Source: Trichosphaerium sp. ATCC 40318 (Eukaryota; Protista; Tubulinea). From it: a stretch of DNA of 64,000 bases. Shown here piece by piece: positions 99-63,322 of the stretch. The notes under the pieces are model-generated. The model was not told where the DNA came from. It made no database searches and saw nothing but the letters and a program-made list of their open reading frames with translations. Within the stretch, counting starts at the first letter, position 1, and each line of letters begins with the position of its first letter. The position numbers were made by a program, and so were the translations under genes. The stretch is from NCBI GenBank assembly GCA_038496445.1, contig JALMLS010000320.1, forward strand, positions 345,290 to 409,289, read 5' to 3'.

Positions 99-515
99 TT
101 CCGCTGTATTTGATTCCATTTAGCCTCAGAATTAATACTTTACGCCCAAATAGCCTGTTTCTGTATCAATCGCCTACGCAATTCGTAAGCAAACGCGTTT
201 CTCAACAAATAGCTGAAAATACTGTCCAACCTTTTTACGATGATCTAGATGATGTTTTGAACGACAGGAAGCGTTTTGTAGTTGATTTGCGTTCAATAGC
301 GCCAAGTACGTTCGAAATAGATGGAGTTTTCGTTAGTTATGGTAAGGTTTTTCAAAACTCGTCAAAGACAACCTATTTTTAGGTTTGAAATCACGTGATA
401 GTTTAAGAGTGTTGGCGTACAATATTATGACTATTTTTAAGAGTTTCATGTGGTAATAAGCCTTTGGCGCAGTGGGTGTTAAGATGCGACATATAAGGTA
501 AGCTTGGTGTTCACG

Positions 516-1644: not shown

Positions 1645-3264
1645 CTAGAGTACGTTGTTAGCATCTTACAACATACACACTTTTTGAGTTCATTTCTTTG
1701 CAGTGCTAATCAAAATACGGAGAATACCTCGTAGCATTTTAATCACGTGTTGTTGTGGTTTTTATTGTACAATCTTCATCTTTTAGTGACCAATTCTTGA
1801 CTTTCAATGAATGTGTGAGTAAGTTAAATAAAAGTGTAAACTGAGGTAAACTTTGCCACTGACAGGCTATGGCAATCGCGACTTACAAACGCTAGATAGA
1901 GATACTATCTACACGGTCCGAACTCTTAACTGTAGGGTGAAACTTGCTTGGTATTAAAAATTACTCACGCAATATTACAAAGGAGATTAAATCTCGGTAT
2001 TGCGTCATGCCGAACATCGAATACAACATTTGTTTTTAACTTGTCAATATCATATTCAGTGTACACATCCTAGTCTCATTCCTGATTACTTCTGGCACGT
2101 TGGTAGTGGCATTACATAGATCTCCGAACAAGCGAAAATGTACTAAGGTCGAACCTACTCCTGCGAAGATAAAGTTGTGTTTCGAAACAAAAAAAGGTAT
2201 TTTCTAAAGCTGCCTTCCTTGGCATTTTAGTGTCAACCCTAGACAAATTTGTACTCCCGCAGTACTACCAATGTCACAATCTTCAGACAACGGAGTACAC
2301 AAGAAGACAAAATTGTTCTTTATGAATCTTCAACACAACTTCCGATGATTTCGTCATGGTTGTTGTTAAAACTATCATCAACACTTCCTATATCCTTTCG
2401 ACACTCACCCGAATGCGTTTAAACAGTATTACGCTATTCCGAGATAGACACGTGATACCTGAGCGCTAACACGTGATTTAGCGTCGTAGATACCGTAGGA
2501 ACAATATAAGTGGTATTCTAATCCTTTGCCTGCACGTGCTGCAAGGTTTGGTGTTTTTTGAAGCGATTGGCGTTTTATGACGCAAGGTTGGCTTTCACTA
2601 CCCAGACGCTGAACAATCATACATCAACATGTATAGTTTAAGCTTGCGGCACTATTATTGGCCGCGGTTTTGACTTATCCTATGCGTAACTTTGTGAGCT
2701 TACCAACATTTGGGAAGAAGTTTACCCGCTTGCTGATTGTAAGACTACAGAACCAAAACAGCAAGTTTTGATTTTTGGCAGTAGATGAAGATCCAAAATA
2801 ATAATTCTTGTAACGATCGCTTTAAAATATAATGATAGCATCACCATGGTTGTTTCAAAACTGCACTGACTTTTTTATACGCCACAACGATGAAGTGGTA
2901 TTTTCGAACTTTTAGAAAACAACACTTGCTTTAGTTACAGGTAACTCCATTATGTGAGTTTGGTAATCGTCGTTTAACAATCCAAACCTAGCCATAGGGT
3001 TCACGCTAAGACTCCGCTTATTTACCTTTTACGTGTTTTACGTCCGGAGAGTGGTGAACGAAAAAACGTGCATAAAATAAAATAACACCCAAACGATGAC
3101 ACAACAGATACAAGGTATAAAAAGTAGTGCCGAATAAAGCTACAATACTGTAGTATTTTATCATGCTTACAGCTGGCTTTGCCTTTTGCTTTAAACTGAA
3201 AAAAATGAGTCTCAAAGTCAAAACTTGGAAGATTGTTTAAAAACCGTTCGCCTTCTTTCTTCTT

Positions 3265-17903: not shown

Positions 17904-18683
17904 CACAAACCGTATGGCCCAACTGGAGCAACTAGTATGCGTTTTTATGGGTTTTTTAGTTCTATTTGGTTTTAATTGATAGTATTTAGCTTAAACGTCA
18001 CGTGCGTGATCAAGAGGAAGCGAACCGTTGTGGTATTTGTTTAGATCATCCAAAAAACAGGTAACCTGTTTTTAGCTTTGTTCACAGTTATCCAGGTGAC
18101 TTTATTAACTGAGATCTCTTAGAACACTTTATCCTTGTGGCCATGGGATGTGCTCTGAATGCTGTGAGGCAATATCAGTGTGCTCGTACTGCAGGAGAGA
18201 CATTGAAAAAATTATACCTCGCTTCCATACTTAAATAGCTTTGAGGTGTAAACAGGAACTTGTACATAATTAATACGTTCCAATACCAAATAATCATACA
18301 AAATGAAGCGTTCGTAGTTGCAATTGTTGTAAAATCGTACTTTTTTGACAAAGTGCACATCACTAATGCTACTTTCCTACATAACTGATATCAGAATTAC
18401 CGCCTCTCCAGGAAACAATCACTGGCAATCATTGTTTTATCTCTAATGCTATGACATACGCACGTGCGAGGATATCTGCGTACATAGTCAGCACGTTGTT
18501 GTGTTTTAAAAATGTATCAGTTTTCTAAGGGTATAAGTTGTTTAATAAAAACTCCAGAGGATGAAACCGTGCGAGAAGGTTTACATAGAAATATTAAATC
18601 ATTGTTTCCAAAGTTACTCAGCATCAAACTTCGCATTACTACTCTGTTTATTTTTGACATTTAAAATACATGTGCAACTTGCT

Positions 18684-21600
18684 TTAAGTACTATTGGTAG
18701 TTTCTAGTATTTTATCGCTATTAACGAAAGCTCCTCTACTTATTTTTTCGAGTTTTCGTTTTAAGTCAACATTACGTTGTTTCAAGTCAGCATTGTTTTT
18801 TTTCAAGTTTTGTACGTTCTTTTTTAATGCGGCTACTTCTTGTTGTAAATCATCATTCTGAACTGATCCTTGAGTTGCATTGCCTTGAACAGTCATAGTT
18901 ATAGACCTTGGCCCATTACTGTTTGATATTTCAGCTTCTGTTTTTGTCATGTAATACATTCGAGGAACAAGCAATAACAATATTGAAATAAAAGGTCCAA
19001 GAACAAGACATAAAGATCGAAGAATGAATGCCACCTCACGATTGCTTGATGAAAACATCTAAAAAATGGTTTAGCACGTGAGGATATATAATTAGAATAT
19101 GGCTTGTACGCACTTGAATGATGATAATAATGATAATGAAGAAAGTAAGGTTGTAAACAGCAAATCCAATTACTCTAAGAATAAACGTCAACAAAAAAAC
19201 CAATTACGTAACAAATCCGTAAAAATCCAAGGCACCTTGATTCGTTGTAGAGAGTTGCTTTGAGTTTCCATATTTTATATATCCAGTAAAGTCCATATAC
19301 AAGAACACCCGCATTAAAGGCCATGAGAACAGCAAAAAATATTGTATCTGTTGTTGAGTTTGCACAAGTGATATAATCATCAGAATGAATAAATGGTGCT
19401 TCTTCGACAAGCTCAGCAGTGCCTCTACTTACTAATGTCCATATAGAAAGTACCACAATTTCTACTGCTAGAATGGCTGCAACAATGGGAATGATCATCA
19501 TATTCGTGACTTTGAAGACAGTCAATGACTTAACAAGGAATATTTGACCAATTCTGTAAATCCTCGCAAACATAGCTCCGTATGTTAACTACAAGCACTT
19601 AACTTGATATCACTACATAACTATAAACGTACACCAAAACCAATAGCTAGAAGCCATCTTGTAAGATTACAATGAAGGTCATCAGTGTGAAGAGTCCAGA
19701 AGAATACAGAACTATACATCAGAATAGTGCCAACCTATTCACTTGTTAGCGATTTTGTTCAGAAAATAAAACCTTTATTAACACCCGTACCAATGTAAGG
19801 ACAACAAACATTGGCTGGGAAGCGCGTATGACTGTATGTTCACGATAAATCAACACCCATACAATGATACTAACAGTTAGGAGAATTGCGCAAGCTACAA
19901 CACCTATAATAACAAGCTCACTTGTGTGCTCTAAAGTAACTTTATCAGTACAACTCCAAGAATGTCAGTAAATAAAATACGTACTGTACCAACCGTAAGT
20001 GGTCTCTCTTTCATCCCATTTAGGTGCTGGATATACGAACTGATCTGTGACAGCGAATAGAGGAGCTATTATTTGGTATTCGATATCCTCATCAATCTGA
20101 TGTGTTAAGCCTGCTCTTCCAATATTTTGACCGAACTGATCAAACTCGCACTCACCGCAAAACCCTGTTATATCGATAGAATTTATTACTTCCTGTAGTT
20201 TATCAACATCAAATGAACTAGAAACAAAATGTTGGTATCCAAAAAAAAAAAATAAAAAATCAGAATTTTCCTCATCAGCGAGAGCTCAATCTTTTTTAAA
20301 TTACAACTTTGAATGTGTTTAACACCAGAAAGTTTACGAATATTAACAGGCAAAGTTTATCAAATCAAAGTGAGCCGTGATCAATGCGTCATAATTCAAA
20401 TAAATTAGGAAAAAGCAAACAATTGAAATTCTCAAAATGACAAAATTATCACGTGCTTTGCTGTTTCAAAAGCGTATTGTATGATATATCCTGCACTGTA
20501 ACCGGCCATGCCTAAAAACATTTGATTAAATCTAAGAAGTAAGGTAGGCGAGGGTGTACCGTGGACTACAGGTTCAATACCATATTTAGCTTTGTACTGG
20601 TTGTTGAACATTAACGCTGAAGTTTCAGTTCCGTTGGTAATGAAATGATGGTAACGAACTCTTTCATCATATTCTTCATAACGCTCAGAACGTACTCTCT
20701 TGTCCCACTGAAAAGTTGGTCCATTAGCATTAAAAATGAATTACAAGTACGTACATTTGAGCCTCCAACCATTACGTATCGAGAGTCTTCTCCTGCCGCA
20801 TCAACAATGCATGGGTTTGACAGAACGTAAGCCTATTTGATTTGTAAGTACAGATATACATTGTAGAATAGGAAGTACATACTTTGGCATTGAAGTTCAT
20901 TCTCTTTGCTGTCTGCATGAAAGCCACGCAAGAAAACAAAGTTCCACCAAGAACAACATCTGTAATAATTGTGAGTTGTAATAAGGGAGCAGAAGCACAA
21001 AGGCTGGTTAGAAAAGGTTCGGGGACATACCAGGTTCCTTCTCTTTGAGCACTGTGATTAGTTTTTCAATATCTGGTTGTACTATTGTTAAATTCGAAGA
21101 AAATGCAATACTTGTGCTGTAAACAAGCTCCATCCCCAAAAACTCAACACTTCTTAGAGCACCATCAGCAATAGCCTCTGCGAAAGCAGTATCTACCAAG
21201 CGTAAATAAAGAAGAAAATAAGATATGGTTGTAAACATCCTACCTTCCCAAAAAATAGCAATTGTCTTAGCATTATTTGAAACAGCGAGTAAGTTCAATG
21301 CTTCAATCATGAACCTTGAATTTGGTTGTAACATGCTAGTGACATATTTAAATCTTCTCCCAAAAGGTAGAGTGCATGGAGGGCTTAGATCGTCATCACA
21401 AATGTAATTACTCGGAGTTGAAGCGCTGGCTAAAAACAACCGTTAACAGTCAAAAACGGATAAAAGTAAAGTAGCCTCTACAACGTTACCATCGTTTGAA
21501 ATAAACTTTTAAAAACACGTGATTTTTCAATTGTTAGCACTTGAAAGATTTTTTGCGTACGTAAAATAGAGTTTACTTTTAACTCATTCGCAACGATTGC

Positions 21601-22331
21601 CGCAGGGACTCCCAAGTGTGTTGTTAGTGGCTAATTAGAAAGGTTAGAAGGTTAGACTAAAAATGAAGAACATACCAACAAAAGGAAGTCGATATTTTCA
21701 TTCTCTATCAGATGCCTTGTAGCATTAGTCGTCGCGTCGCTGTTACCCTCTAAGCAAAGAGAAAATATGTTAGTTTCAAGTACACCTGCGATGGGAGTTT
21801 TACAAGTAGGACTCTCCCGTAGCTACAATGGACTGTTTTAAACTACTCAACGAGCCATACCTGTTTCTAATACAATAATTTCTACATTATAATTCGTTCC
21901 GTTCACTAGTATACCTCCTCGAGCGTTTACCTTAGCAAACAAGTAATTAGATATTGATCGATTTATGGGTTGGGTTAATTTATGTGAAGTTATTTGTAAA
22001 TATTGTAAACAGCGTTTTTCTCACTACAACATTGATAATCCAGCTCGAAAACTACCCAAAGGGAGGATACAGTGATGCATCACAGTCTAAAAGACTGATA
22101 ACTGAATTTGTAAATGCTGTGGTGAGAAATAGTACGTTTTAGAAATTCCGGATTTGTACCCCGGCCACGTACCGTTTCTTTCCACATTTGATAAGAGTTT
22201 CGAGCCCGAGTTTGAAAAATAACTGTGGAGCCTTCAGTAGGGTACACATGTCCGATGCGGATTACGTTTTGAGCAACTGAAGGTGCTATAATACATAATA
22301 TTACCAAGGTAATAATCGCATAGGAGCTCAT
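18684..22331 (-). CDS. Family C (GABA-B/Grl-like) GPCR, copy 1
   Basis: Signal peptide, periplasmic-binding/Venus-flytrap-like region (IRIGHVYP..G, GGILVNG..YNVEII), 7TM with family-C motifs (YNESR.IG, LLVPRMY), C-terminal coiled coil. Confidence 0.88.
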
Positions 22332-23395
22332 GTGTAATTGAGTGAATTGTAATAACTGCGAGTTAAGGAAGCACAATTTTCAATCAAAATTCCTAATGAC
22401 GTGTTATGTCGATTTTAAGCTGAAAGTTTCCCTTCTATCCCTTTTGTGTGCGTAGACTTACCATTCAGATACATTCTGAGTCGGCATTTTTTGGATACAA
22501 GCCAGGCGTGGGTTACGAAAGAATGAGTTTTCTGCAATACCTCACTTTGCAAAGAGTCGAAATATGCCAATGTAGCATCCTCTACGCTCAGTGATACCAA
22601 GCAAAGTCGGTGCGGTCCTGGAAACGTTCATAAAAATCGTCATGTAATGCATGAACACCTCAAACACTGTTTGTTGGGACATTTGGCTTATACGATTGAT
22701 GATTGGTATAATAGTAGTCACATGTGATTTGAATATCTGGGTTCAAACGTTAGGTATTCGCTTATAGTGATGTGTTCTATCATAACTCCAAAAATAGTTT
22801 AATTTAGTTACTTTTTTAAGTATAGTTTAGCTAAGTCGGTCTCAATGCAAATATCTTCATTTCGAGCTTTGCTACATTGTATAGGGTTGAAATTAATACC
22901 ATCACACGTTTCTGTTTTACAATTAAAAACACAACAAGTGGCTCACATATGGGAAATGTTGAATGAAAGTAGTTGAAATTTATTGTTTTCCCAACCTACG
23001 CGTGATGTTATATGTAGTGTTCTACACTTTCCTTGTTTTGAACTGAGTATATGACACGGTAGGATAACTATTACTAATTGTAAAAATACATACAATAGCG
23101 TTTGTGCCAAACACGGTCACTTTTTCCAATTTTTCCGCAACATCAACAAACAATATGCGTACCATGTGAGTGATACATTTTAGTCAGCACGTTGTGTTTT
23201 AAAATGCATCAGTTTTCTAAGGGTATAAGTTGTTTAATAAAAACTCTAGAGGATGAAACCTTGCACGAGGAGGTTTACATACTCTTGGATGTACCAAGAT
23301 GAAACAATCATTGTTTTCAAAGTTACTCAGCATTGCAAACTTCTTTAGAGCTACTCTGTTTATTTTTGACATTTAAAATACATGTGCAATTTGCT

Positions 23396-26300
23396 TTAAG
23401 AACTATTGCTTGTTTCTTGTATTTTATCACTATTAACGAAAGCCTCTTTACTCATTTTTTCGAGTTTTCGTTTTAAGTCAGCATTGTTTTGTTTCAAGTT
23501 TTGTACGTTCTTTTTTAAAGCGGCTACTTCTTGTTGTAAATCATGAACTGATCCTTGAGGTACATTCCCTTGAATACTAATGTTTATAGACCCTGTACGA
23601 TTACTGTTTGATATTTCAGCTTCTGTTTTTGTCATGTAATACATTCGAGGAACAAGCAATAACAATATTGAAATAAAAGGTCCAAGGACAAGACATAAAG
23701 ATCGAAGAATGAATGCCACCTCACGATTGCTTGATGAAAACATCTAAAAAATGGTTTAAGCACGTGATGGATATATAATTAGAATATGGCTTTACGCACT
23801 TGAATGATGATAATAATGATAATGAAGAAAGTAAGGTTGTAAACAGCAAATCCAATAACTCTAAAAATAAACGTGTCAACAAAAAACATTACGTAAGAAA
23901 TCCAAGGCACCTTGATTCGTTGTAGAGGGCTGATTTAAGTCTCCATATTTTATATATCCAGTAAAGTCCATATACAAGAACACCCGCATTAAAGGCCATG
24001 AGAACAGCAAAAAATATTGTATCTGTTGTTGAGTTTGCACAAGTGATGTAATCATCAGAACGAACAAACGGTGCTTCTTCGACAAGCTCAGCAGTGCCTC
24101 TACTTACTAATGTCCATATAGAAAGTACCACAATTTCTACTGCTAGAATGGCTGCAACAATGGGAATGATCATCATATTCGTGACTTTGAAAACAGTCAA
24201 TGACTTAACAAGGAATATCTGACCAATTCTGTAAATCCTCGCAAACATAGCTCCGTATGTTAACTACAAGCACTTAACTTGATATCCTCATTTATACTAC
24301 AAGAGCGTACACCAAAACCAATAGCTAGAAGCCATCTTGTAAGATTACAGTGAAGGTCATCAGTGTGAAGAGTCCAGAAGAATACAGAACTATACATCAG
24401 AATAGTGCCAATCTATTCATTTGTTAGCGATTTTGTTCAGAAAATAAAGCCTTTATTAACACCCGTACCAATGTAAGGACAACAAACATTGGCTGAGAAG
24501 CACGTATGACTGTATGTTCACGGTAAATCAACACCCATACAATGATACCAAGAGTTATAAGAATTGCGCAAGCTACAACACCTATAATAACAAGCTCACT
24601 TGTGTACTCTAAAGGAACTTGATCAGTACAACTCCAAGAATGTCAGTAAATAAAATACGTACTGTACCAACCGTAAGTGGTTTCTCTTTCATCCCATTTA
24701 GGTGCTGGATAAACGAACTGATCTGTGACAGCGAATAGAGGAGCTACTATCTGCTTTTCGATATTCTCATCAATCTGATGTGTTAAGCCTGCTCTTCCAA
24801 TATTTTGACCGAACTGATCAAACTCGCACTCACCGCAAAACCCTGTTATATCGATAGAATTTATTACTTCCTGTAGTTTATCAACATCAAATGAACTAGA
24901 AACAAAATGTTGGTATCCAAAAAAAAAAAAATCAAAAAAGTCAGAATTTTCCTCATCAGCGAGAGCTCAATCTTAAGCTTAATCTTTTTTCATTAAAACT
25001 TTGAATGTGTTTAACACACCAGTAAGTTTACGAATATTAACAGGCAAAGTCACAAAATTCTAAATGAGCCGTGATCAATGCGTCACAATTCAAATAAATA
25101 AGGAAAACCAAAAAAACAAAACTAATGCAAATTCTCGCAAATAACAAAATCACGTGCTTTGCTGTTTCAAATGCGTATTGTATGATATATCCTGCACTGT
25201 AACCGGCCATGCCTAGAAACGTTTGATTAAATCTAAGAAATAAGGTAGACGGGGTGTACCGTGGAGGACAGGTTCAATACCATATCTAGCTTTGTACTGG
25301 TTGTTGAACATTAACGCTGAAGTTTCAGTTCCGTTGGTAATGAAATGATGGTAACGAACTCTTTCATCATATTCTTCATAACGCTCAGAACGTACTCTCT
25401 TGTCCCACTGAAAAGGTGGTCCATTAGCATTAAATGAATTACAAGTACGTACATTTGAGCCTGTAACCATTACGTATCGAGAGTCTTCTCCTGCCGCATC
25501 AACGAAGCATGGGTTTGACAGAACGTAAGCCTATTTCATTTGTAAGTATAGATATACATTGTAGAAAGACGGCAGGAGAATAGGAAGTACATACTTTGGC
25601 ATTGAAGTTCATTCTCTTTGCTGTCTTCATGAAAGCCACGCAAGAAAACAAGGTTCCACCAAGAACAACATCTGTAATAATTGTGAGTTGTAATAAGGTA
25701 GCACAAGCACAAAAAGGTTTTTATAAAAGATTCGGGGACATACCAGGTTCCTTCTCTTTGAGCACTGTGATTAGTTTTTCAATATCTGGTTGTACTATTG
25801 TTGAATTCGTAGAAAATGCAATACTTGTGTTGTAAACAAGCTCCATCCCCAGAAACTGAACACTTCTTAGAGCACCATCAGCAATAGCCCTGGCGAAATC
25901 ACTATCTTCCCAAAAAATAGCAATTGTCTTAGCATTATTTGAAACAGCAAGTAAGTTCAATGCTTCAATCATGAACCTTGTATTTGGCTGTAACATGCTA
26001 GTAACATATTTAAATCTTCTCCCAAAAGGTAGAGTGCATGGAGGGCTTAGATTTTCATCACAAATGTAATTACTCGGAGTTGAAGCGCTGGCTAAAAACA
26101 ACCGTTAACAGTCAAAAACGGATAAAAGTAACCCCAACAACGTTGTGGTCATTTTAAATAAACTTGGTTTGGACCGTTAAAAAACACGTGATTTTTCGAT
26201 GAATGTAAAATTTGTAATGTAATACACCCTTATCATTTAATTGCATTGGTTAGCACTGAGGTATGTCCGTTTTAACGTACGTAAAATAGAATTTACTTTT

Positions 26301-27061
26301 AACTCATTCGCAAGGATTGCCGGAAGGATTCCCAAGCCTGTTAGTGGCTATTGAAAAAGGTAAGAAGGTTAGACTAAAAAAAGAAGAAAACGTACCAGCA
26401 AAAGGAAGTTGATATTTTCATTCTCTATCAGATGCCTTGTACCATTAGTCGCCGAGGCGCTGTTACCCTCTAAGCAAAGAGAAAATATGTTAGTTTCAAG
26501 TACACCTGCGGGAGTTTAACGCAGACATACTTGCGACGGAGTTTTACAAGTAGAGCTATCCCGTCTGCAAATGGACTGTTTTTAAACTACTCAACGAGCC
26601 ATACCTGTTTTTATTTCAATAATTTCTACATTATAATTCGTTCCGTTCACTAATATACCTCCTCGAGCGTTTACCTGAGCAATTTGAAATTAGATATTGA
26701 TCGATTAAGGATGAAGAGAAGTTATTTGTAAATATTTTAAACAGCGTTTTTCTCACTACAACATTGATAATCCAGCTCGAAAACCTCCCAGAGAGGGATG
26801 AAGTGTTGTGTCCGCAGTAGGATAGACTGATAACGCAATTTGTAGATGCTGTGGTGAGAAAAGAAGTTTTTCGAAATTTCAGAATTTGTACCAGCCACGT
26901 ACCGTTTCTTTCCACATTTGATAAGAGTTTCGAGCCCGAGTTTGAAAAATAACTGTGGAGCCTTCAGTAGGGTACACATGTCCGATGCGGATTACGTTTT
27001 GAGCAACTGAAGGTGCTATAATACATAATATTACCAAGGCAATAATCGCAGAGGAGCTCAT
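23396..27061 (-). CDS. Family C (GABA-B/Grl-like) GPCR, copy 2 (tandem paralog)
   Basis: Near-identical exons and introns to 18684-22331. Confidence 0.88.
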
Positions 27062-27666
27062 GCTGTAATTTAGTGAATTGTAATAACTGCAATAATTCCG
27101 CAAGTTAAGGCACAATTTTCAATCAATATTTCTTTGGAAATCTCTCCAAAAAATTCAGTAATATTCATGCAGTTTTGGTTCACGTCTTAGGTGAGCAAAA
27201 ATTATGCCAGTTGATAGGTTAATTGTAATATTTCAGAAATCCTACAATATGTAGTACTTTGAGCGCTTTCGTGGACTGTTATTAAAAAAACCATTTCTAT
27301 TAGCGCAAACGATCTGGCAATAAGTAGTTCTACGCACACAAAGTGATGCCAATAAGTTTCTGTGGCGTTTTAGGAGCACGTGACAAATATCGCTTTTTTG
27401 CTACCAAGTAACCGTCAACATTGCGTTTTGTGCTAGAGAACCTAGGGGGTGAAAGAAAAGCAATCATGTCAGGTCCAACAGCACAAGCGAAACAAAATCA
27501 AGATCCTCAAAACGCCGCGATCACCAAAACACCAATGAATATTAATGAATATGGCTTACATTACCATTGCTTATATTCATAATGGGAGAACATAAGGTGG
27601 ACGCAGCTTTCAATAGTCAGGTGTTTTCAAGTCCATAATATTATTGTAGAGTAAATTAAAAGCGTT

Positions 27667-29628
27667 ATGGCGTCGCCAGAAGCAAGGCAAGTTTATTAAA
27701 CTTTGTATAAAAACGTCGCCAACATTAGATTCCAAGTGCCCTCTTTTTTTGTTCTTTTACCATTAACACTGCTACATGTGTAAAGCTTACAAGCGCAACA
27801 AGTGTAAATCAGAGATTTAGTTGTTCTCGTTGCTAATATAAACTTTCTTCCAGGTTACAGTTGCTTGACTTGCCTGTTCAGATTATTACAGCAATACTTT
27901 GTTTACCTGGCATTGTACCTTTTGATATTATTCTTGTGTGCCATTTTTTATCACGTGTAATATGGGATCACGTCGGTTATAAGGAGCTTCATATATTTAC
28001 AAGAAAAGATATTCAATCGCTATGCTCTATTGGTGGTAACTTGAAAAGAAATACGAAACTAAATATTGGATATGATTTACAACAAATAATTTCAACAAAA
28101 GATATTAAAGACCTTTCAGGTACGTCACTGAGAAACTCTTTTTTAAAGCAAATCTGTCGTACCACTTCATAAATATACGTGGTGGTATTATTCCACAAAG
28201 TCAAGGGTTTTTTTGAGTCTACACAAGCTTTGCTTCGAAGTAGTACCCAATTTGAATTTGCTTTTCTTTCCGATTATTTTCTACCACGTGATAAACCCAT
28301 ACCTTAAAATACTGTCTCAAAAGCATGCCACGTTCCTCAGAAACTCTGCTTTTTTGAATATAAAATAGTTGGTAGATATATAAAATCTCGTTTATCAGAT
28401 TCCGATTTTAAGTTATTGTCCGGTGTACACACAATACAGATGCAGAAATGAGATGTTATTACTGATAAAGGTATTTGTCATTTGGCTGGTGCTCATACTG
28501 TTTTAATTTACCTGTACAGTAAAATAACTGATATCGGCATTTCTGCTCTTGCAGGTGTTCACAATATTTATCTAAGCACGTGCAATAATATTACTGATGA
28601 AGGTATATCAGCGCTTTCCGGTGTCCATACTATACATCTGTCACAACTGAATATAACAGACAAGTGCATAAGAAGTCTCGGTGGTGTTCATACAATAACA
28701 ATAACAGAGTGTAACAAAGTTACTGACTATGGCATTGAAGCATTACGTGGTGTTCACAAAATAACTTTATAGTATCTTTATAAAGTACATGATGGTATAA
28801 AAGCTCTCTCTGGTGTTCACAGTATAACTTTGGTAAGGTGTAACAACATAACTGTCAATGGTGTGAAAGGACTAATGTCAGGAAGAAAACCACATTATGT
28901 CCGTTTAGAGGAATGTTCAAATATCCCTAACAATGCAATACAAGCTCTAAAAGGTGTTCACACGATTGAACTGTCTGTATGTCACCAAGTCACAGATGAA
29001 GATATTAACTGCCTTGCTGGGGTTCACTCATTAGAACTAGCTGATTGTCCTCGTTTAACAGGAACTTGTTTTAAAAATCTCAAAGGTATTCACACTATTG
29101 ATATCTGTGATTGTTATGGTGTAACAGATAAACGTGTGTGATCTTTCTGGTGTAAGTATATTAAACCTTAGATGTTACACCTTTCAATGTAAGGGATTCA
29201 GCGCTTTAAAAGGTGTCAAAGAGGCTTTATTTGATGGTCACATGAGAGATGAAGGACTGATTGGTGTTGCTGGTTTATCAAAGTTATTACTTCCACGAGG
29301 TAACCGCTTTATAACTGATAAGGGTATCATGGCTCTTGCTGGTATTAAGGAACTAGTTATACCAGAATGTATTAATATAACAAACACTGGCATCAAAGCA
29401 CTTGTGGGCGTTCAGCATCTAAATATTTCTAGTTGTTGTAAAGTCTCTGATGAAGGTATTCAAGTTCTTGTTGGTATTAAGACTCTTGATATTTCACGTT
29501 GCATGTTAATAACAGACAATGGTATCAAGAACTTGGTGGGTTTAAGAAAGATAAAGTATAAATGTACTCAAGTTACAAAAGAAGGTGTTTATAAGTATCT
29601 CAACTTGAGAAACTACTTTGACTACTGA
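27667..29628 (+). pseudogene. F-box + LRR (GVHT-type repeat) pseudogene
   Basis: LLDLPVQII F-box-like start, repeats L.GVHTI.L..C..ITD.GI; in-frame TGA 28449-28451, TAG 28770-28772 and a frameshift in a GT run at ~29135. Confidence 0.8.
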
Positions 29629-30039
29629 ACTTCATTTAATGTAAGAAGTAGTAACAAGTTCACATTCAATAAACTACCTTAAGTCAATCTGTGGTTCCAT
29701 AACTCTGCAGGGGTTAGCTACTAACGATTAATTTTACACTTTTTATGTAAGACCTGTTTGCAGAAAATGCAGGTAATTGAATGCCATTTAATCTACAACA
29801 CAAAACCTACCACATTGAACATTCTACCTGCTGGGCCCAATGAATGGATGTACCACAGAGTCTACGGAGTAATGTCGGGTTCACTTCAAGCTAGGATATT
29901 TTGGACAAGGATGCAAAGGTTTCACGGAAACTTCGGAAGTAAATTCAGGTAGTTTGCTCAAAACTGTTGCACACCCCGCAAAAGGGTAGACGTATTTTAT
30001 TAAACTGCCTGTGACAATCGTCTTATACAACCTTCTCTA

Positions 30040-38749: not shown

Positions 38750-39106
38750 GATATTTACTGGATTTCGAGAATGTTGAGACGTTTTTACTCATCTCATAAC
38801 CATCTTAAAGTTCAATTTCTGGTTTAGTCATGTAGCTAGTATTCTATACTTATTGGCATCAAAACCATTTTGCAATTTGTTCTTGCTGTGCTGAGGAAAA
38901 GTACCGACAGTCAAAGCAACTTTTTTCAAAACAAAATTTTTTATTTTAAATTTTCGGAATTTCTGTAACTGTCTCAAAGCGATGCTGCCCTTAACGTCAC
39001 ACTAAAATAGCCGGGTCAAAGCTAGCAAACTAACGCACTGATACAATTAGTTTAATTTATAACGCAATAATGCTACAAACTAGTAAATACACCGCTCAAA
39101 GGTAAA
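38750..39106 (+). repeat. ~355 bp dispersed repeat, copy A (upstream region + exon 1 of the F-box/LRR gene)
   Basis: Near-identical reverse complement at 62969-63322. Confidence 0.93.
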
Positions 39107-40279
39107 CTTATACTTCATTGCTCTATTTTTCGCTTAAAATATCTCTACAGCACGCAAATAAGCATCTTGGACTTCCCTACAGAGATTTTAGCTCATATAT
39201 TACGGCAACTTACAAAAGCGCGATTTACAGCTTGTCAAACCTGTCATAGCATTGCTTCTATCATACACGACATTATAGGATACGACAGCGTTACAATAAG
39301 TACTGTGGACCATGCCAAATCGCTTCTAAAACACACCAGCACTCTTACATACACTAAAATCAAAATGATTGGTAACATTCCATGTAGTATTATAAAAGAG
39401 TTTGCTGGTGTTCGCAACATTAGTATTGGAGTTTCTGAAGGTATAACAGATGAATGTATCAAATCACTTGCTGGTGTCCATACCATTAATCTGAGCAATA
39501 AAAACTGTAATGATGGGGATCTCACACTTTCTGCCTTGCTAGCAGGTGGTTGCTGCAAGTCTATTACAGATGAAGGGATAAAAGCTCTTGCTGGTGTTCA
39601 TGAGATTAACCTTTATAACTTAGATGTTACAGATGAAGGTATCAAATCGCTGGCTGGTGTTCATACCATTGACTTAAGTTGCTGTTACAACATTACAGAT
39701 GAAGGTGTAAAAGCTCTTGCTGGTGTTCATACCATTCACCTGTATGATTGTGATATTACAGATGAAGGTATCAAATCACTGGCTGGTGTTCATACCATAG
39801 ATTTAGGTAACTGTGATATTACAGATGAAGGTGTAAAATCTCTTGCTGGTGTTCATACCATTCACCTGTATGACTGTGACATTACAGATGAAGGTATCAA
39901 ATCACTGGCTGGTGTTCATACCATTAACTTAAGTTGCTGCCACTACATTACAGATGAAGGTGTAAAATCGCTTGCTGGAGTTCATACCATTTTTCTAAAC
40001 AATACTAGAGTTACAGATGAAGGTATTAAGAACCTTTCAGGAGTGCATACAATCGGCCTTCGTTTTTGTAAACAAATAACAAACGTCAATGCACTTTCAG
40101 GTGTTCATACTGCCATACTTGCAAATACTTCAGTAACAGATGAAGGCATACAATCGCTCTCTGATGCTTATAGGATAGATCTTTGTAATTGTATATACAT
40201 TACAGATGAAGGCATCAAATCACTTAATGGTGAGGTGTTGCATACGATGAATCTTGTTGGTGCATCGGCCACATATTAG
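39070..40279 (+). CDS. F-box + LRR (GVHT-type repeat) protein
   Basis: Exon 1 MLQTSKYTAQ, GT-AG intron, then ILDFPTEIL F-box and about 10 repeats of ITDEGIKSLAGVHTIxL. Confidence 0.88.
39440..40050 (+). repeat. Coding tandem repeat, 72-75 bp units
   Basis: Near-identical acagatgaaggt.t.aaa..ct.gctggtgttcataccat units. Confidence 0.9.
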
Positions 40280-45304: not shown

Positions 45305-48300
45305 ATGGAAGACTTCGTGCGTCTTTTCGCTGCCATGGAGGCTATCAATGCTGCTCAAAATAGCAGAAATGGGCGACTAAGCGATCATTTACAAGCCTTC
45401 AACACTTCTGTGATAAGTACGTTATTATTTAACCAACAATTAGTTAACATGTATTAAAACAGTACGTGGGGATACCGTACATTATCACAGCCCTTCTAGA
45501 GTACGTTTTAATAAAAAAAAATAAAGCAAAATTTACTAATAAGCGTTGATCGAATACCATAGGTGCCAACCGTTGTATTCGGTAGAAGACCTTGGTACGT
45601 TACCATCACACGACCATAGAACGTGTTTTACGTTGGGTCCTTGAGTTCCTGCATTGCCGGTTCCTATTACAACCTTATTTATGAAATAATAGGAGTGTTG
45701 GAGGTCTCAAAGAGATTGAGTATTTTGAGGTCACCTTCAAACTCACTCTGTCCGGTCTGAACGGTGCCATTTCTGTTGGCCTTGCTGGAGAGTCATTCCC
45801 TAAAAATGGTCAACATCCAGGATGGAAACCTGGTTCTGTAGCTATTCACAGTGACGATGGAAACTTGTAAGGAGTTTTCGGCATTTTTTCTTTGTTAACA
45901 GCACGATATGATTTAATTTATCTTCAATGTAGATTTCGGCAAGCTGGTATTGGTGTACCCTTCACCAAACCGTTCCACTACCATGGTACACGTGTTGGTA
46001 TTGCTATGGATACTACTTCAGGCCAAATTGTGGCTGTTTTGAATGGTGTTGTGGCGGGTTAGTTTTCGGTTAACTGGTCGCACCTTTATTGAAAGAGTTA
46101 GGTACTATGGGTACTATCTCAAGAGGAGAACAGTTTTTCCCTGTGATTGGGTTCTCCAATAGCGAAGCTGTTGTTTCCGTGAATATGACAGGACCAATAC
46201 AACCAAAGGAGGAAGAGTGCGCCAAACAAAATAAAATCGTTTTATTAATTAACAATTACAAGACCACAACTTCCCGACAATGCACTCCATGTCATGGCTG
46301 AAAGAGGTGACCTAGATGCTGTGGGTAAATTGCTTCTATTAGGGTAAGTGAATGATGTGGTTATTTGCCATGTTGACGAGTATTAGTACCGATGTGAATA
46401 GACTTGACGACGAAGGAAACACTGCTCTTTTTTACGCTATAAAGAATGGTCATGCTCAAACTGCCAAATGTCTACTCGAAAACGTACGCTTTTGAACCCA
46501 AAGACATCTTGATCAATGGAAAGAAATAATACTTCAAAAGGGTGCTAGAAAGAATATTACACGGAAAGGCTATAACATGTACTACATAGCAGCACAAAAT
46601 GGTAAACAAACTTTTCTTGTTTTTTTCTTTTTCTTCAGCTAAACTTACACTTTCCTGTTAGGTCATCATGCTGTTTTGATGATTCTTACACTCAAACATG
46701 TACCTGGTATAGATAGGGTATCACCAAGCGGATATACGGTTAGAAAAAATTGATGTGTTGATGCTAACACGAGCGTGATAGCCGCTTTGCATTGCAGCTC
46801 AAAAAGGACACATGCAATGCGTAAAAGTTCTTCTATCTACAGGCGCTGTTAATGTGATGTATAAGTTCCAAGGTCGTTGGACAGTAGCTGATATCGCAAG
46901 AGATAAGCATCACTTCAGTTTGGCAACCTTCTTGAGCTTGAAAATCAAAGGTAGTTGCCCTGTAACAATTCGAGCTGTTTTCGGTTAACAGCTTTTTTTT
47001 AAGAAAAACAGGCAAAAGAGCGCCCTAAGCCAGCACCAGCAAGAAAATACACACCTCCACAACAGACTTACAAGAAGAGTCAGCAATCGACATCAAATAC
47101 AAAAAAGTTTACTAGAAGTGAACTTCAAAGAATGTCAGTATCGAAACTAAAAAGTTTGGCTTCTGAGCGCAATATTTCATTGGCTGGTGCTTATGAAAAG
47201 TCAGATGTAATAAACAGAATCTTGGGTGGATCTAAAGCAATTCCAAATAATGCTTATCCACAAAAGAAGTCTGCCCCTAAGCCAAAACCGACAGGTGATA
47301 GTGTGGATGTTTGTATCGTAGTTGAGTTTTCAGGAAATAAGAAAAGAATGGATTTCAAAGCTACTACGATGTATGAAGTCAAGACAACTGTTGCAAGTAG
47401 ATTCCGTATTTCAGGAGATGTACGTCACTTTTAATATGTACATGAACTAAGCATATTATTCTAGACTTCAAAGTTCGAGTATTATGATGGTTTATTTGAA
47501 GAGTATGTTGATTTACCGGAGAAATTAGCAGAATTGAAAATGCCCGCCAAAATTAGAGTAACTGAGCTTCACGTGCGTGTTGTTTTTTCGTCCTGTGAAA
47601 TAACATCTAATACTGGGTACTTAGGATAAGGAACGTATGGCGTGGGATTTCTCGAGTGCACTTACGTCAAGTGATGGTTGGGTACAAAAAGGTAATTATT
47701 CTTATGTGTTGTAAAAAAAGTGTTTACATGATTCAAGGGTATGGTGATAACATTTACAATTCTTTGCTACTCAAGGACGGAAATAAAATAATATTCCCAA
47801 CGGAGCTTAAAAAACTAAAGAGCTTATTACGGAGGTTAGTACACTAAAGGGTTATAAAGCTTGAAAAGTAGTAATTACTAATTTTTAACACTTTTAATTT
47901 TTAACACTTTAAAGGTATCATAATGGAGATGGCTTGGATATTGTCAAAGCATATGCTATTGATAATCCTACATTAAACTCTGCATTCAAAGCTTATGCGA
48001 AGAGTAATTGGGGAAACAGGCGATCTTCACCAAATTTGTTTAACGTACACCTTTTTTTTCTCATTTTTTTCTCATTAGTATTGCGTTTTGTGGTGGCTAT
48101 TGCTACTGCGTTTAATGGGCGTAAAGAGAATTATGATATATATCTATCACTTAAACTTTAAAAGAGTTCTCAAAAACGTTTTTCATATGACTGAAGATGT
48201 CTTCTTTATCGATTAAGGGAATGTTAACAAAGTTGTAGTTAAGAACCTGGAAGAACGATCAGTATTCACATAGAGCGTGGACAATTAAGCCTCTGTTTAA

Positions 48301-49233
48301 AATGATTCAAGAATGCAATTGGAACGAAGGTACTGAAAGAGAACCTGTTGTACCTATGCTTCAAGGAACAAAGCTTGAGCAAGTATGGAAAATTTGCCAA
48401 AATGGTTACTCCACCACTGCAACACGTGATGCTGGATGGTTCGGTAAAGGTACACAGAAAAGTGATTGCCTTAATTGTTTTGAACTAAAATTTTGTTTCA
48501 AGGGATGTACTTTACGTCCTCTGCAGCGTATGCGTTGACTTATGCTGAGAAAGACGATAATGGTCACAAATGTATCACATTGAATTTGTGTATCCCTGGT
48601 AATGTATATCCTGTAATTGAAAGTCCTGTTGGAAAGGATTCTCTAAAGGGAAAGGCTTATGTAAACGGATACCAATCGCACTTTGTCCGTGTATCGTCTG
48701 GGATAAGTGGTGCGGTGAATTCTTTTTTTTTCTCAAAACTTTTTCGCTTTTTGTATCTAAAACTAAAAATAACTCTTGTTCAACTTTTCTAATGAGCTAG
48801 TAAAAGACAACAAGATTTTTTGATACTATTCAAATAACTTATTGTTGGCTTGTTTTTTATCGCTTTAATGTCATATACTGCAACTTCAATAAGTGGTATT
48901 AGCACCCTTTTTGGTTTCATGGTAGTCTTCACGACATCAACACTTTAGCATTGTTTTTGTAGACCGTTTTCTAATAAATTCATCAAGATATGGGATATCC
49001 TGCAAAGATTGATACAGAGGGATGTTATGACGAACTGGTAACGTTTCAGGTGTGTTTTTTGAGTAAAAAGCTTCAAAAATGGAAAAAAAAGAGGAATGCT
49101 TGTTTTAGAAATTTGAGTGTAACTTGCTGCTACCCTTTCAGTCATTTTTTTATTTATCTGGGCAGTCACTAACCTCGATTTTATTTAGAATTATCAAGTG
49201 CTCCCGAAATATGTTATTATAGTAAAAACATAA
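45305..49233 (+). CDS. SPRY + ankyrin repeats + SAP/HeH-like + PARP-catalytic-domain protein
   Basis: SPRY (YFEV..ISVGL..HPGW..SVAIHSDDG), ankyrins (TPLHV-like ..ALHVMAERG, GNTALFYA, PLCIAAQKGH), SVSKLKSLASERNISLAG, PARP signature LQGT..ICQNG..GWFGKGMYF..YA...YDELV..QVLPKYVI. Confidence 0.85.
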
Positions 49234-49592
49234 AGAACCGTTGTGTAATGTGTGATGGTATTATTAAAGCTGTAGCACTGTATAGATTACTAATTTACCA
49301 TAAAAGATATCCTTCAAATAAAAATTTCGATATTTATAGTTTTGGCATTCACCAGCTGGATGGATTTATTACAATGTATTTTTGCCTTTGAATTGGGTAC
49401 AAGAGGTTTAAACAACTGCTGAATAGCTTCTTGACAGAGACTTACCACTGTTGTTCCACAAAAATGGTAAACTAACAGCCATAAGGTAAAAGTAATAAAA
49501 TGTAACAAAAACGGTGATTGCGTCTCGTGCCTCCTATCAGTTACGACAGCCATTAGTACACCATCGAACACCTACAAGATACGAAGTATAAA

Positions 49593-49670
49593 ATTGAGCT
49601 CAAGTCAATCGCCTTAACCACTTGGCTACTCTCCTGTTGATAGGAGAGGCGGGATTCGAACCCGCGAGAG
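49593..49670 (-). tRNA. Circularly permuted tRNA-like gene (3' half upstream of 5' half), anticodon TGA
   Basis: Minus strand: GCGGG-TTCGAAT-CCCGC-CTCTCCT-A, spacer TCAAC, then AGGAGAG-TA-GCC-AAGTGGTTAA-GGC-G-ATTGA-CTTGAGC-TCAAT; all four stems pair perfectly. Confidence 0.7.
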
Positions 49671-50457
49671 TTTGTTTTTTGTTATTTGGTGTGACAGCAT
49701 ACTGGGGGTATGAGACACGGTGACTGAGATTATTGCACCGCACTGAAACAGAGAACCAACATGTTTAAGTACACGTAATAGTTGACAGAAAAAATGATTG
49801 TGGGATTTCATTCTGCTAAAATTAGCAAAACATCAAAGAACATGAAAATTACTTTTTTTTGCCACTGCTGGATTACTTTACCTATACGTAACGTGCATTT
49901 AATTGCGGGTTTAGTCAGTATCCATACTTTTAGTGAGTTCTCCAAAAGAGCCTAGCTATACAACAGAGTTTACCAGAACTAGAACTACCTAAAGTGACAA
50001 ACGCTGAAATACCAATTTATGTATATTTGATTCAAACACATAAGGAGTTGTCGAAATAAAAAGAATTAAATACTTCATCTCTACCTTCAACTTTTTTTCC
50101 ACATGTCCAAATAGATGAAACGTATTGTCCGTATCATTCAAGTTTGCATACCTTTGCAACTTTTTGCTGTTTGTGACTTTTGGTTTTCGTGTTTAGTCAG
50201 ATCTGACAGTTCTTGCAACTTCTGTAAGTTCTTACAAGATCTGACACTAGTGAAAGTGGTGGAACAAAAATGACAAAAAACGTTAAGTGTTGTAGTTGAA
50301 CTGCCATTAACCATCCACAAAACCAAATATTGCGTAGATATGGCCAGGTCACATATCTAGCTTTAAAAAAGAGTAAATTGACACATTTTTGTAGTTAAAA
50401 AACTGCGAAATTTCCCGATTTATGAGTGTAACTTAGTTTTCAAATAATTCTACGGAG

Positions 50458-51788
50458 ATGACAACCGCGGTAGTTAGCAATACCATAATAACACGTACTG
50501 TAACCACTCAGCACTCAAAAAGATGTAGAGCAAGCAGGAAACCGATGACATTTACTTTTCTAATTGACGTATCAGGCTCAATGGTGCGTATAAATCAACG
50601 CATAGTGACCTGCGAGTGCCTGTACCTTATGCTCACGTGTTTGTATAAAGTCCGGCTCAAGAATTAGAGCAACAACTCAAGCAGTACAAACAATGGCGAA
50701 AACAGTGCTAGAGAAGCAAGATCTTGTGGCTCTCAAAGTTTTTAATGATGACGACGCACGTACAATCTTTGGATTGAAACAACCTTCTAGCGTACGATGG
50801 AATGTAGCGAAATCTAAAATAAAGACAACTGGAGGTACGTTACACGTTTTTTGAAGCGTCGCGCTTGTGAAAAGTCTGTCAGAGACTTTTTATTAAAAGG
50901 CGTCTAAATGACTTCTCTTACCTCTAGGAACACGTCTATATGATGCTATTGATAAAACAATGTCAGTTATGCCTTATGGAGCGAAATACAAGAAATATCA
51001 CCGACAACTAGTTGTTTTGACTGACGGAGAAGACAACGGATCTAGAATGTCGTATGAAGATTTAAAAGCGCGTATCAAGGAGCCTGGTATTAAGAATTTT
51101 CACTTGATACTTATTGGTGTTAACGTCAGTCTGGAATACGAGACGAAACTCAGGTATTCATGGGTTTTTTGGAAAACGTGATATTTTGTGCTGACTTTCT
51201 TCTTTAGGACCCTTTGTAACAAGCCTCATTTCCGGTACCTTGATTGTGGTGCTAGTAGTGAAGATATCAAAAAATCTTTTGGTCGTGCGAAGAAAGTTGT
51301 TATGGAGTACATCACCACAACAACAACAGAAACTCGAGTATCAACTGTAACAACCATGAAAGGAAAAAATCAAAAAATGATATCGCCACCTCCTACGTCA
51401 ATACCTCTTGACAAGAACCTCATAACAAACTCTGTGCAATCAAACAGACAGCCACTGCGCAAGAAGAAGAATCCAACACGTAACAAGAAGGGAACCAGCT
51501 GCTTTGTAGGAGGTATAGAACACGAGGTACGGATGAGAGTGCTCATGAGTTCAACGGCTTACTTTTTTTTTTTTGAAAAAGTCAACAAAAAAGGAATTGG
51601 AAGATTTTTTCTCACCGTTTGATGCCAATTGTTGTGTGACCTCTGAAATAAGATATAACAAGAAACATCAAGCTTATTTTGCATTTATCAAGTTCTCAAC
51701 ATCAGTTGCAGCAGAGTTTGTGTCATCAACAGCTTTCATTGAAGAGAACAGGTTCAAAAAATCGAAGCTTACTATAAATATCGTTTAA
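50458..51788 (+). CDS. vWA domain + C-terminal RRM-like protein
   Basis: MIDAS DVSGS, GT.LYDAI, LVVLTDGEDN; C-terminal CFVGGI (RNP2-like) and YFAFIKF (RNP1-like). Confidence 0.8.
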
Positions 51789-62968: not shown

Positions 62969-63322
62969 TTTACCTTTGAGCGGTGTATTTACTAGTTTGT
63001 AGCATTATTGCGTTATAAATTAAACTAATTGTATCAGTGCGTTAGTTTGCTAGCTTTGACCCGGCTATTTTAGTGTGACGTTAAGGGCAGCATCGCTTTG
63101 AGACAGTTACAGAAATTCCGAAAATTTTAAAATAAAAAATTTTGTTTTGAAAAAAGTTGCTTTGACTGTCGGTACTTTTCCTCAGCACAGCAAGAACAAA
63201 TTGCAAAATGGTTTTGATGCCAATAAGTATAGAATACTAGCTACATGACTAAACCAGAAATTGAACTTTAAGATGGTTATGAGATGATAAACGTCTCAAC
63301 ATTCTCGAAATCAGTAAATATC
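62969..63322 (-). repeat. ~355 bp dispersed repeat, copy B (inverted)
   Basis: Reverse complement of 38750-39106 with a few small indels. Confidence 0.93.

Follow-up and report, generated by a model that had tools for sequence, protein, structure and literature searches.

The minus strand of the window, by which we mean the whole 64,000-nucleotide stretch of DNA analysed here, carries a real, structured RNA gene of 231 nt (about 49741-49511) that is expressed at the level of its family. The unit consists of a tRNA-like core in circularly permuted order and a closing helix, the rod, which joins both of its ends. Its best explanation, to which we give an even chance of being right, is that it is a rod-borne tRNA mimic, processed no further than by an opening of the acceptor end that leaves two pieces.

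The permuted tRNA-like core

On the minus strand, the parts of a tRNA follow one another in the order T arm, acceptor 3′ strand with A73, 5-nt linker, acceptor 5′ strand, D arm and anticodon arm. A pyrimidine tract ending in tRNA positions U47 and C48 (49666-49670) leads into the T arm with its B box (49649-49665), in which sequence and fold give five of five stem pairs and a canonical T loop. The acceptor 3′ strand (positions 66-72; 49642-49648) is followed by the discriminator A73 (49641), after which no CCA is encoded, by the linker that closes the acceptor stem (49636-49640) and by the acceptor 5′ strand (positions 1-7; 49629-49635); the two strands pair by Watson-Crick rules at 7/7 positions, beginning with A1-U72. 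U8, A9, a class II-type D arm with a 3-bp stem and the A box, and G26 occupy 49610-49628 (the D arm itself 49611-49626). The anticodon arm (49593-49609) has a 5/5 stem and the loop CT-TGA-GC, with the anticodon TGA at 49600-49602 and G37 at 49599. At the position of a variable arm lies a small hairpin of 4 bp with a 3-nt loop (49579-49589), preceded by an internal T4 run.

The permuted tRNA-like layout is confirmed as a real feature. A descriptor of the full layout, run on both strands, matched the 64-kb window at a single site, whereas 300 Markov-2 controls of 64 kb gave no match. A position check on the genomic pieces found U8, A14, G15:C48, G18G19, A21, U33, G53-T54-T55-C56, A58 and C61 all canonical, and C48, which can pair with G15, sits on the opposite side of the variable-region break from its partner. 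An exact B box lies upstream of an exact A box within the unit. Conventional searches of the window returned nothing: ARAGORN gave no tRNA or tmRNA, and Rfam gave no match at gathering score.

A sequence-only reading of this DNA had proposed a circularly permuted gene broken in the variable region, with neither half having its missing partner on the normal side. All three points stand: every element is present in permuted order, the break falls between positions 43 and 47, and no partner half is seen in the flanking DNA on either side. An interrupted normal tRNA gene was rejected on this last ground.

The rod and the limits of the unit

The same reading had confined the gene to 49575-49690, which proved too narrow: the closing helix adds about 55 nt on the 5′ side and 65 nt on the 3′ side. 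The predicted rod is formed by a 5′ arm at 49688-49741 (minus strand; pair probabilities mostly 0.8-1.0) and a 3′ arm at 49511-49572 (minus strand), the first bases of which resemble a decayed T-stem start. It leaves the core at the variable region; topologically, the fold can be modelled as a greatly extended variable arm open at its tip, with the acceptor stem closed by a loop. Between the rod and the T arm lie 22 unpaired bases, most of them in a single-stranded A-rich linker (49671-49687, minus strand; fold and RNA contigs), and about 20 unpaired or weakly paired bases, including the small hairpin, separate the anticodon arm from the rod.

The 237-nt stretch with the unit folds with z = -3.0. 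The duplex of the rod arms has an energy of -39.4 kcal/mol, a value reached in 26 of 2000 shuffles and in 2 of 5102 genomic pairs of the same geometry, one of which has the identical value and is presumably the unit itself. Constraining the unit to a cloverleaf costs only 1.6 kcal/mol.

From the fold, the transcript is predicted to start near 49741-49744, and the RNA contigs described below stop at 49732-49734. A TATA-like element, TTAAA (49764-49768, minus strand), lies 23-27 nt upstream of this predicted 5′ end and may serve as a promoter element. At the other end, a T5 run (49507-49511, minus strand) begins at the last rod pair, directly after the terminal helix, and is a probable Pol III terminator. 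T5 runs occur 4.7 times per kb on the minus strand, hence only the position of this one is informative; TTAAA-type motifs are likewise common in this AT-rich DNA, and only position counts.

The sequence-only reading had taken a CAA-rich leader, which is the A-rich linker above, and the T4 run after the anticodon stem as possible Pol III start and stop. Neither role could be upheld, both elements being internal to the rod-closed unit: the CAA tract was rejected as a promoter for that reason, and T4 was rejected as a terminator because the RNA contig of a near-identical copy reads through it.

RNA contigs over the unit

We compared the window with contigs from four runs, X6, X1, X3 and X7, none of which contained half of the sampled words. 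X6 is a probable RNA run whose RNA type was guessed by the tool and whose sample is possibly mixed; assembled contigs of this kind show neither strand nor transcript ends. The X6 contigs cover 49560-49734 and the spliced exons of the gene to the left, with none on its introns or on the immediate flanks of the unit. Their word depth, a poor measure of expression, is 309-1170 on the unit versus about 4 on the neighbouring mRNA. No contig of X1, X3 or X7 lies on the unit. The stretch 49511-49559 is without contig coverage, and the 3′ end of the unit is that predicted from the fold.

If X6 is RNA, the unit's family is expressed, through a 96%-identical copy with a UAG anticodon and an intact acceptor linker. 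The only contig over the core, 145 nt long, crosses both the acceptor linker and T4 uncut. Relative to the window it has five substitutions, four of them listed (window > contig: C32>A, G35>A, A36>G, C50>U), and one inserted A. Its loop reads A-U-UAG-G-C versus C-U-UGA-G-C in the window, which gives it a Leu anticodon. Because the neighbouring mRNA in X6 differs from the window at only 1 of 240 bases, this contig is most simply explained by a second gene copy, the alternative being a difference between strains or alleles. RNA editing and errors of reverse transcriptase are unlikely, given the low divergence of that mRNA and the kinds of change seen, among them G35>A, C50>U and the inserted A.

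The window's own TGA loop is absent from the contigs of all four runs, in which minor variants are dropped. Nor do these contigs list the backward joint that a rejoined form would produce; this is weak evidence, because ordinary RNA-seq contigs would miss a short, modified mature tRNA. They list no CCA end, a feature that contigs cannot exclude. A loose poly(A) end at 49671 may come from internal oligo(dT) priming on the A-rich tract or from tailing of a cut leader.

Leucine and serine identity

Leucine identity in eukaryotes depends on A73, C3-G70, A4-U69, G5-C68 and a long variable arm, and serine identity needs G73, with A73 blocking human SerRS (PMC9976931). The unit has A73, A4-U69 and G5-C68, together with G37. 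It has G3-C70 in place of C3-G70, and a 4-bp hairpin where a variable arm, possibly a long one, would lie; in place of the serine determinant G73 it has A73, the antideterminant for human SerRS. Judged by these positions, the body of the unit is of the Leu type. Of the mixed Ser/Leu identity proposed earlier, the Leu-like body therefore holds, resting on A73, A4-U69, G5-C68 and G37, but a serine tRNA does not: the unit is best read as Leu-derived, with an anticodon loop unlike that of the expressed UAG copy.

The 7-nt anticodon loop takes three of the five substitutions between the window and the UAG contig; a test made after the pattern was seen gives p about 0.0007 over 144 nt and 0.003 over unpaired bases. 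The expressed copy has the purine A32 where the window has C32; a purine at position 32 is unusual in tRNAs. An anticodon loop that changes more quickly than even the unpaired linkers fits a non-decoding molecule, diversifying pressure or anticodon shifts among working genes, and does not decide among them.

Comparison with known permuted RNAs

Permuted tRNA genes are known from Cyanidioschyzon, prasinophytes, the Bigelowiella nucleomorph and Thermofilum (Soma 2014, PMC3978253). The 34 published permuted tRNAs have junctions at 15/16, 20/21, 37/38, 50/51 and 59/60 and acceptor-end linkers of 1-74 nt, include class II tRNAs in excess, and mature by a cut at a bulge-helix-bulge (BHB) motif, circularisation and then opening by RNase P and RNase Z (PMC3978253). 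Like these genes, the unit places the 3′ part first, closes the acceptor with a short linker (5 nt, inside the published range), and has the full tRNA consensus (U8, R15:Y48, G18G19, U33, T54-T55-C56). It may also share their upstream TATA-like element and downstream T-run, which lie at fitting places but are common motifs in this DNA. It differs in its variable-region junction, its lack of a BHB motif, its amoeba-like host and its rod of about 55 + 60 nt, set off from the arms by unpaired linkers.

Enumeration of pairings between the upstream and downstream sides gave no strict BHB (3-4-3, with both outer helices) at a usable junction. Relaxed rules gave 86 BHB-like matches, of which the only leader-trailer match with a variable region of <25 nt is an all-A/U helix; its formation would abolish the small hairpin and yield a loop without structure. 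The earlier suspicion that the break lacks a BHB and represents a different type is thus sustained: we found no credible BHB motif, and a variable-region junction is absent among the 34 published permuted tRNAs. With neither the motif nor a published junction position, the unit is not a BHB-type permuted tRNA gene.

The best Rfam match of the unit is YrlA, the bacterial and phage Y RNAs (RF02553; PMC4201824; bioRxiv 10.1101/312249), with E=0.005 over model positions 23-88 and a score of 27 bits vs a gathering score of 69. The arm order is that of YrlA (T arm, loop-closed acceptor stem, D arm), in both RNAs the tRNA-like module sits on a stem made by pairing of the ends, and the acceptor stem is of 7 bp as in the RNase P-cleaved YrlA of M. 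smegmatis, whose acceptor is opened without ligation (PMC4201824; bioRxiv 10.1101/312249). The GNCGAA(N)G Ro60-binding motif is absent near the 5′ end of the unit, as is the vertebrate motif. YrlA has no anticodon loop and builds its anticodon stem from the 5′ and 3′ strands, whereas the anticodon arm of the unit is intact and its closing helix leaves at the variable region rather than at the anticodon stem. The unit is, moreover, eukaryotic and 231 nt long. YrlA lies within 4 kb of a Ro60 (TROVE) gene on the same strand; 25 exon-sized pieces around the unit, part of those present, gave no TROVE match in a scan whose sensitivity is limited by short exons. On score, Ro60 motif, anticodon loop, size and Ro60 neighbour, the unit is not a YrlA.

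In permuted tmRNA, tRNA-processing enzymes remove the acceptor loop and leave two base-paired pieces that are not ligated (PMC11915505). Its gene is permuted, as is the unit, and it offers a model for how the acceptor loop of the unit might be processed. The unit differs in having D and anticodon arms, which tmRNA lacks; we found in it no tag reading frame and no pseudoknots, and the Rfam tmRNA match (E=1.9) is confined to the T arm and acceptor. The unit has its gene order in common with permuted tRNA genes and probably works like YrlA.

Similar layouts in phage-like loci

Neither half of the unit has an exact match in viral contigs, its junction has none in metagenomes, and BLAST against phages gave only short, generic tRNA matches. 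A looser pattern, biased to the acceptor sequence of this unit, matched 4 viral, 13 metagenomic and 1 genomic locus, 18 loci with 17 distinct units. All 18 have a T arm, a loop-closed acceptor and a D arm, many are part of phage-like tRNA clusters, and none consists of two ordinary tRNAs side by side. The single match in bacterial and archaeal genomes is a YrlA-like locus without an anticodon arm. In L002-L018 there are often two such units per locus; those tested scored 34-62 bits on YrlA, below the threshold of 69, and an ACAGCAA motif lies upstream in L005, L011, L012, L016 and L017.

Two distinct units have an intact anticodon arm. One, L013 (about 110-290, minus strand, of contig Ga0315287_10274434), stands directly before a tRNA-His in a phage-like cluster and reproduces the layout in full: an A-rich linker is followed by the T arm, a closed acceptor (CTCTC/GAGAG), a D arm of class II type, an anticodon arm with the loop CT-ATA-AA and a variable hairpin, and a rod closes the unit. 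It has no Rfam match at E 0.05. The other (L001 4667-4704 minus, identical to L009 8223-8260 plus) precedes a large phage tRNA cluster, encodes CCA in its acceptor linker and has the loop TT-TTG-GC; none of 10 genes tested with Pfam beside it in L009 is Ro60. Both differ from the unit in their prokaryotic or phage context and in their anticodon loops (ATA, TTG). The likeness of L013 is that of one locus from a biased search, compared for the tRNA core alone, and does not imply homology with the unit. No BHB-type splicing endonuclease has been reported in bacteria (PMC4201824; bioRxiv 10.1101/312249), and L013 shows that the permuted layout occurs in a setting for which none is reported.

Two further observations were made at these loci. 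L009 has a ligase-domain gene 7 kb upstream of the permuted unit, and L013 contains at 1823-1932 (minus strand) a 110-nt tRNA match whose anticodon region has an additional hairpin, which may be an intron or insertion.

Interpretation of the unit

As a rod-borne tRNA mimic, the unit would be a nuclear gene of the Pol III type for a non-coding RNA, belonging to a small family that descends from a tRNA-Leu gene. Pol III would transcribe about 231 nt, from the upstream element or the permuted boxes to T5, and the RNA is predicted to fold as an L-shaped tRNA with a loop-closed acceptor stem and a variable region that runs into the rod. This would place a tRNA-shaped binding module, with its elbow and its D and T arms, on a handle, as in YrlA or two-piece tmRNA. 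Opening of the acceptor stem by RNase P and RNase Z, perhaps with addition of CCA, is plausible because these enzymes recognise a 7-bp acceptor stem and T arm (PMC3978253). The two pieces would then be held together by the rod, with the halves not ligated and no decoding; a Ser anticodon on a Leu body could be explained because the anticodon loop of a non-decoding RNA is free to vary. The gene may have arisen by tandem duplication of a tRNA-Leu gene and loss of the outer parts, an origin that has been proposed for permuted RNA genes and that the T-stem-like bases after the variable hairpin would fit. As to function, we can only guess at a scaffold or decoy for tRNA-binding proteins or anticodon nucleases. 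Several points speak against a mimic: the full tRNA consensus is intact, including a perfect anticodon arm, U33 and purine 37, more than a mimic would need; the features that define YrlA are absent; and the phage-like parallel rests on one or two loci from a biased pattern.

That consensus is instead what a true permuted tRNA gene with a new junction type would show, a reading we consider unlikely, though more probable than the other rivals. The RNA would be cut independently of a BHB, ligated in the variable region into a circle, and then processed by RNase P, RNase Z and CCA addition; the rod would hold leader and trailer, and the family would supply tRNA-Leu. In that case the TGA copy, its anticodon shifted, would place Leu at UCA/UCG codons or be poorly charged. 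The linker length, the TATA-like element and T-run placed as in algal permuted genes, the excess of class II tRNAs among permuted genes and the Leu determinants A73, A4-U69 and G5-C68 all agree with such a gene. The lack of a BHB does not, and the rod does not mark cut sites, because the 22 and about 20 unpaired or weakly paired bases noted above separate it from the arms. Against it, too, are the missing backward joint in the contigs of the four runs, the clustering of paralog differences in the anticodon loop with A32 in the expressed copy, and the occurrence of the same layout in a phage-like cluster, where no such splicing endonuclease is reported.

Another reading, which we consider improbable, takes the TGA copy for a duplicate of the expressed Leu(UAG) unit that is silent or decaying, its loop a mutation without function whatever the role of the family. 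Such a duplicate would explain why the only core contig has the UAG loop, C50>U and the extra A while the window's loop is in no contig. However, all stems, both boxes, the rod and T5 are intact in the window copy, its C32 and C50-G64 are more canonical than the paralog's bases, some contigs match its 5′ arm exactly, a low-depth contig lacks the extra A, and contigs drop minor variants. The sequence-only reading's own alternative, a fragment of an organellar or viral tandem tRNA cluster in the nucleus, in which one gene's 3′ half adjoins the 5′ part of its neighbour, was not borne out and is highly improbable: the bases after the variable hairpin do resemble a T-stem start and the acquisition of many giant-virus genes is reported for the lineage (PMC10521059), but the supposed neighbours are complementary at 7/7 positions, the rod encloses the core, no remnant of either missing half is seen, no contiguous viral match was found (the searches for halves and junction being negative and the phage matches short and generic), 0/18 loose-pattern loci are ordinary adjacent pairs, and the flanks are spliced nuclear genes.

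We also considered, with little confidence, that the unit belongs to a eukaryotic class, so far undescribed, of permuted tRNAs borne on rods. Phage tRNA clusters would contain such RNAs as well, and they would be opened at the acceptor and charged with Leu. Each would serve either as a two-piece RNA whose anticodon loop is hypervariable or, once ligated independently of a BHB, as a Leu-charged tRNA that reads Ser codons.

A literature search of incomplete coverage found no description of the permuted rod-borne layout for eukaryotes and no report of a YrlA-like or two-piece tRNA-shaped RNA from amoebae. If the unit is a mimic, it would be such an RNA in a eukaryotic nucleus; a tRNA-like domain is not apparent in metazoan Y RNAs (PMC4201824; bioRxiv 10.1101/312249). 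If it is a tRNA gene, permuted tRNAs would extend beyond algae and one archaeon, and maturation without a BHB would be required. This locus contributes three things: a Leu unit that bears a Ser anticodon, differences that cluster in the anticodon loop, and a parallel among phage-like loci. With near-identical copies that differ mainly in that loop, the question is directly testable; the case is weaker for the TGA copy alone, whose own loop is unseen in RNA.

Genomic setting

The window DNA is eukaryotic, with about 36% GC, short exons and GT-AG introns that are spliced in the RNA contigs, and its Pfam matches include MORN, PSI, family 3 GPCR, LRR and kinase domains. Its base composition and short introns agree with those published for the amoebozoan Trichosphaerium (37.7% GC; PMC10521059). 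The unit lies between two plus-strand genes: the left mRNA contig ends at 49330, and the right gene starts near 50456-50458. The left spliced gene (47000-49330, plus strand) has weak matches to SAP (E 0.004) and to the PARP catalytic domain (E 0.0025). The right one (50458-51620, plus strand) resembles by eye a stand-alone von Willebrand A domain, with no Pfam match on single exons. Between the unit and this gene, 50123-50236 is matched at about 94% by contigs of other loci in three runs and is a small dispersed repeat.

Elsewhere in the window, about 18600-27100 contains a tandem duplication of about 4.7 kb (91-98% identity) holding a family 3 GPCR-like gene, and an inverted repeat of about 320 nt (96-99% identity) is found at 38789-39106 and 62969-63287, 24 kb apart. 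Single-exon F-box/LRR and MORN-repeat genes lie at 39167-40279, 28500-29630 and 516-1058; these gene types are often common to amoebae and giant viruses.
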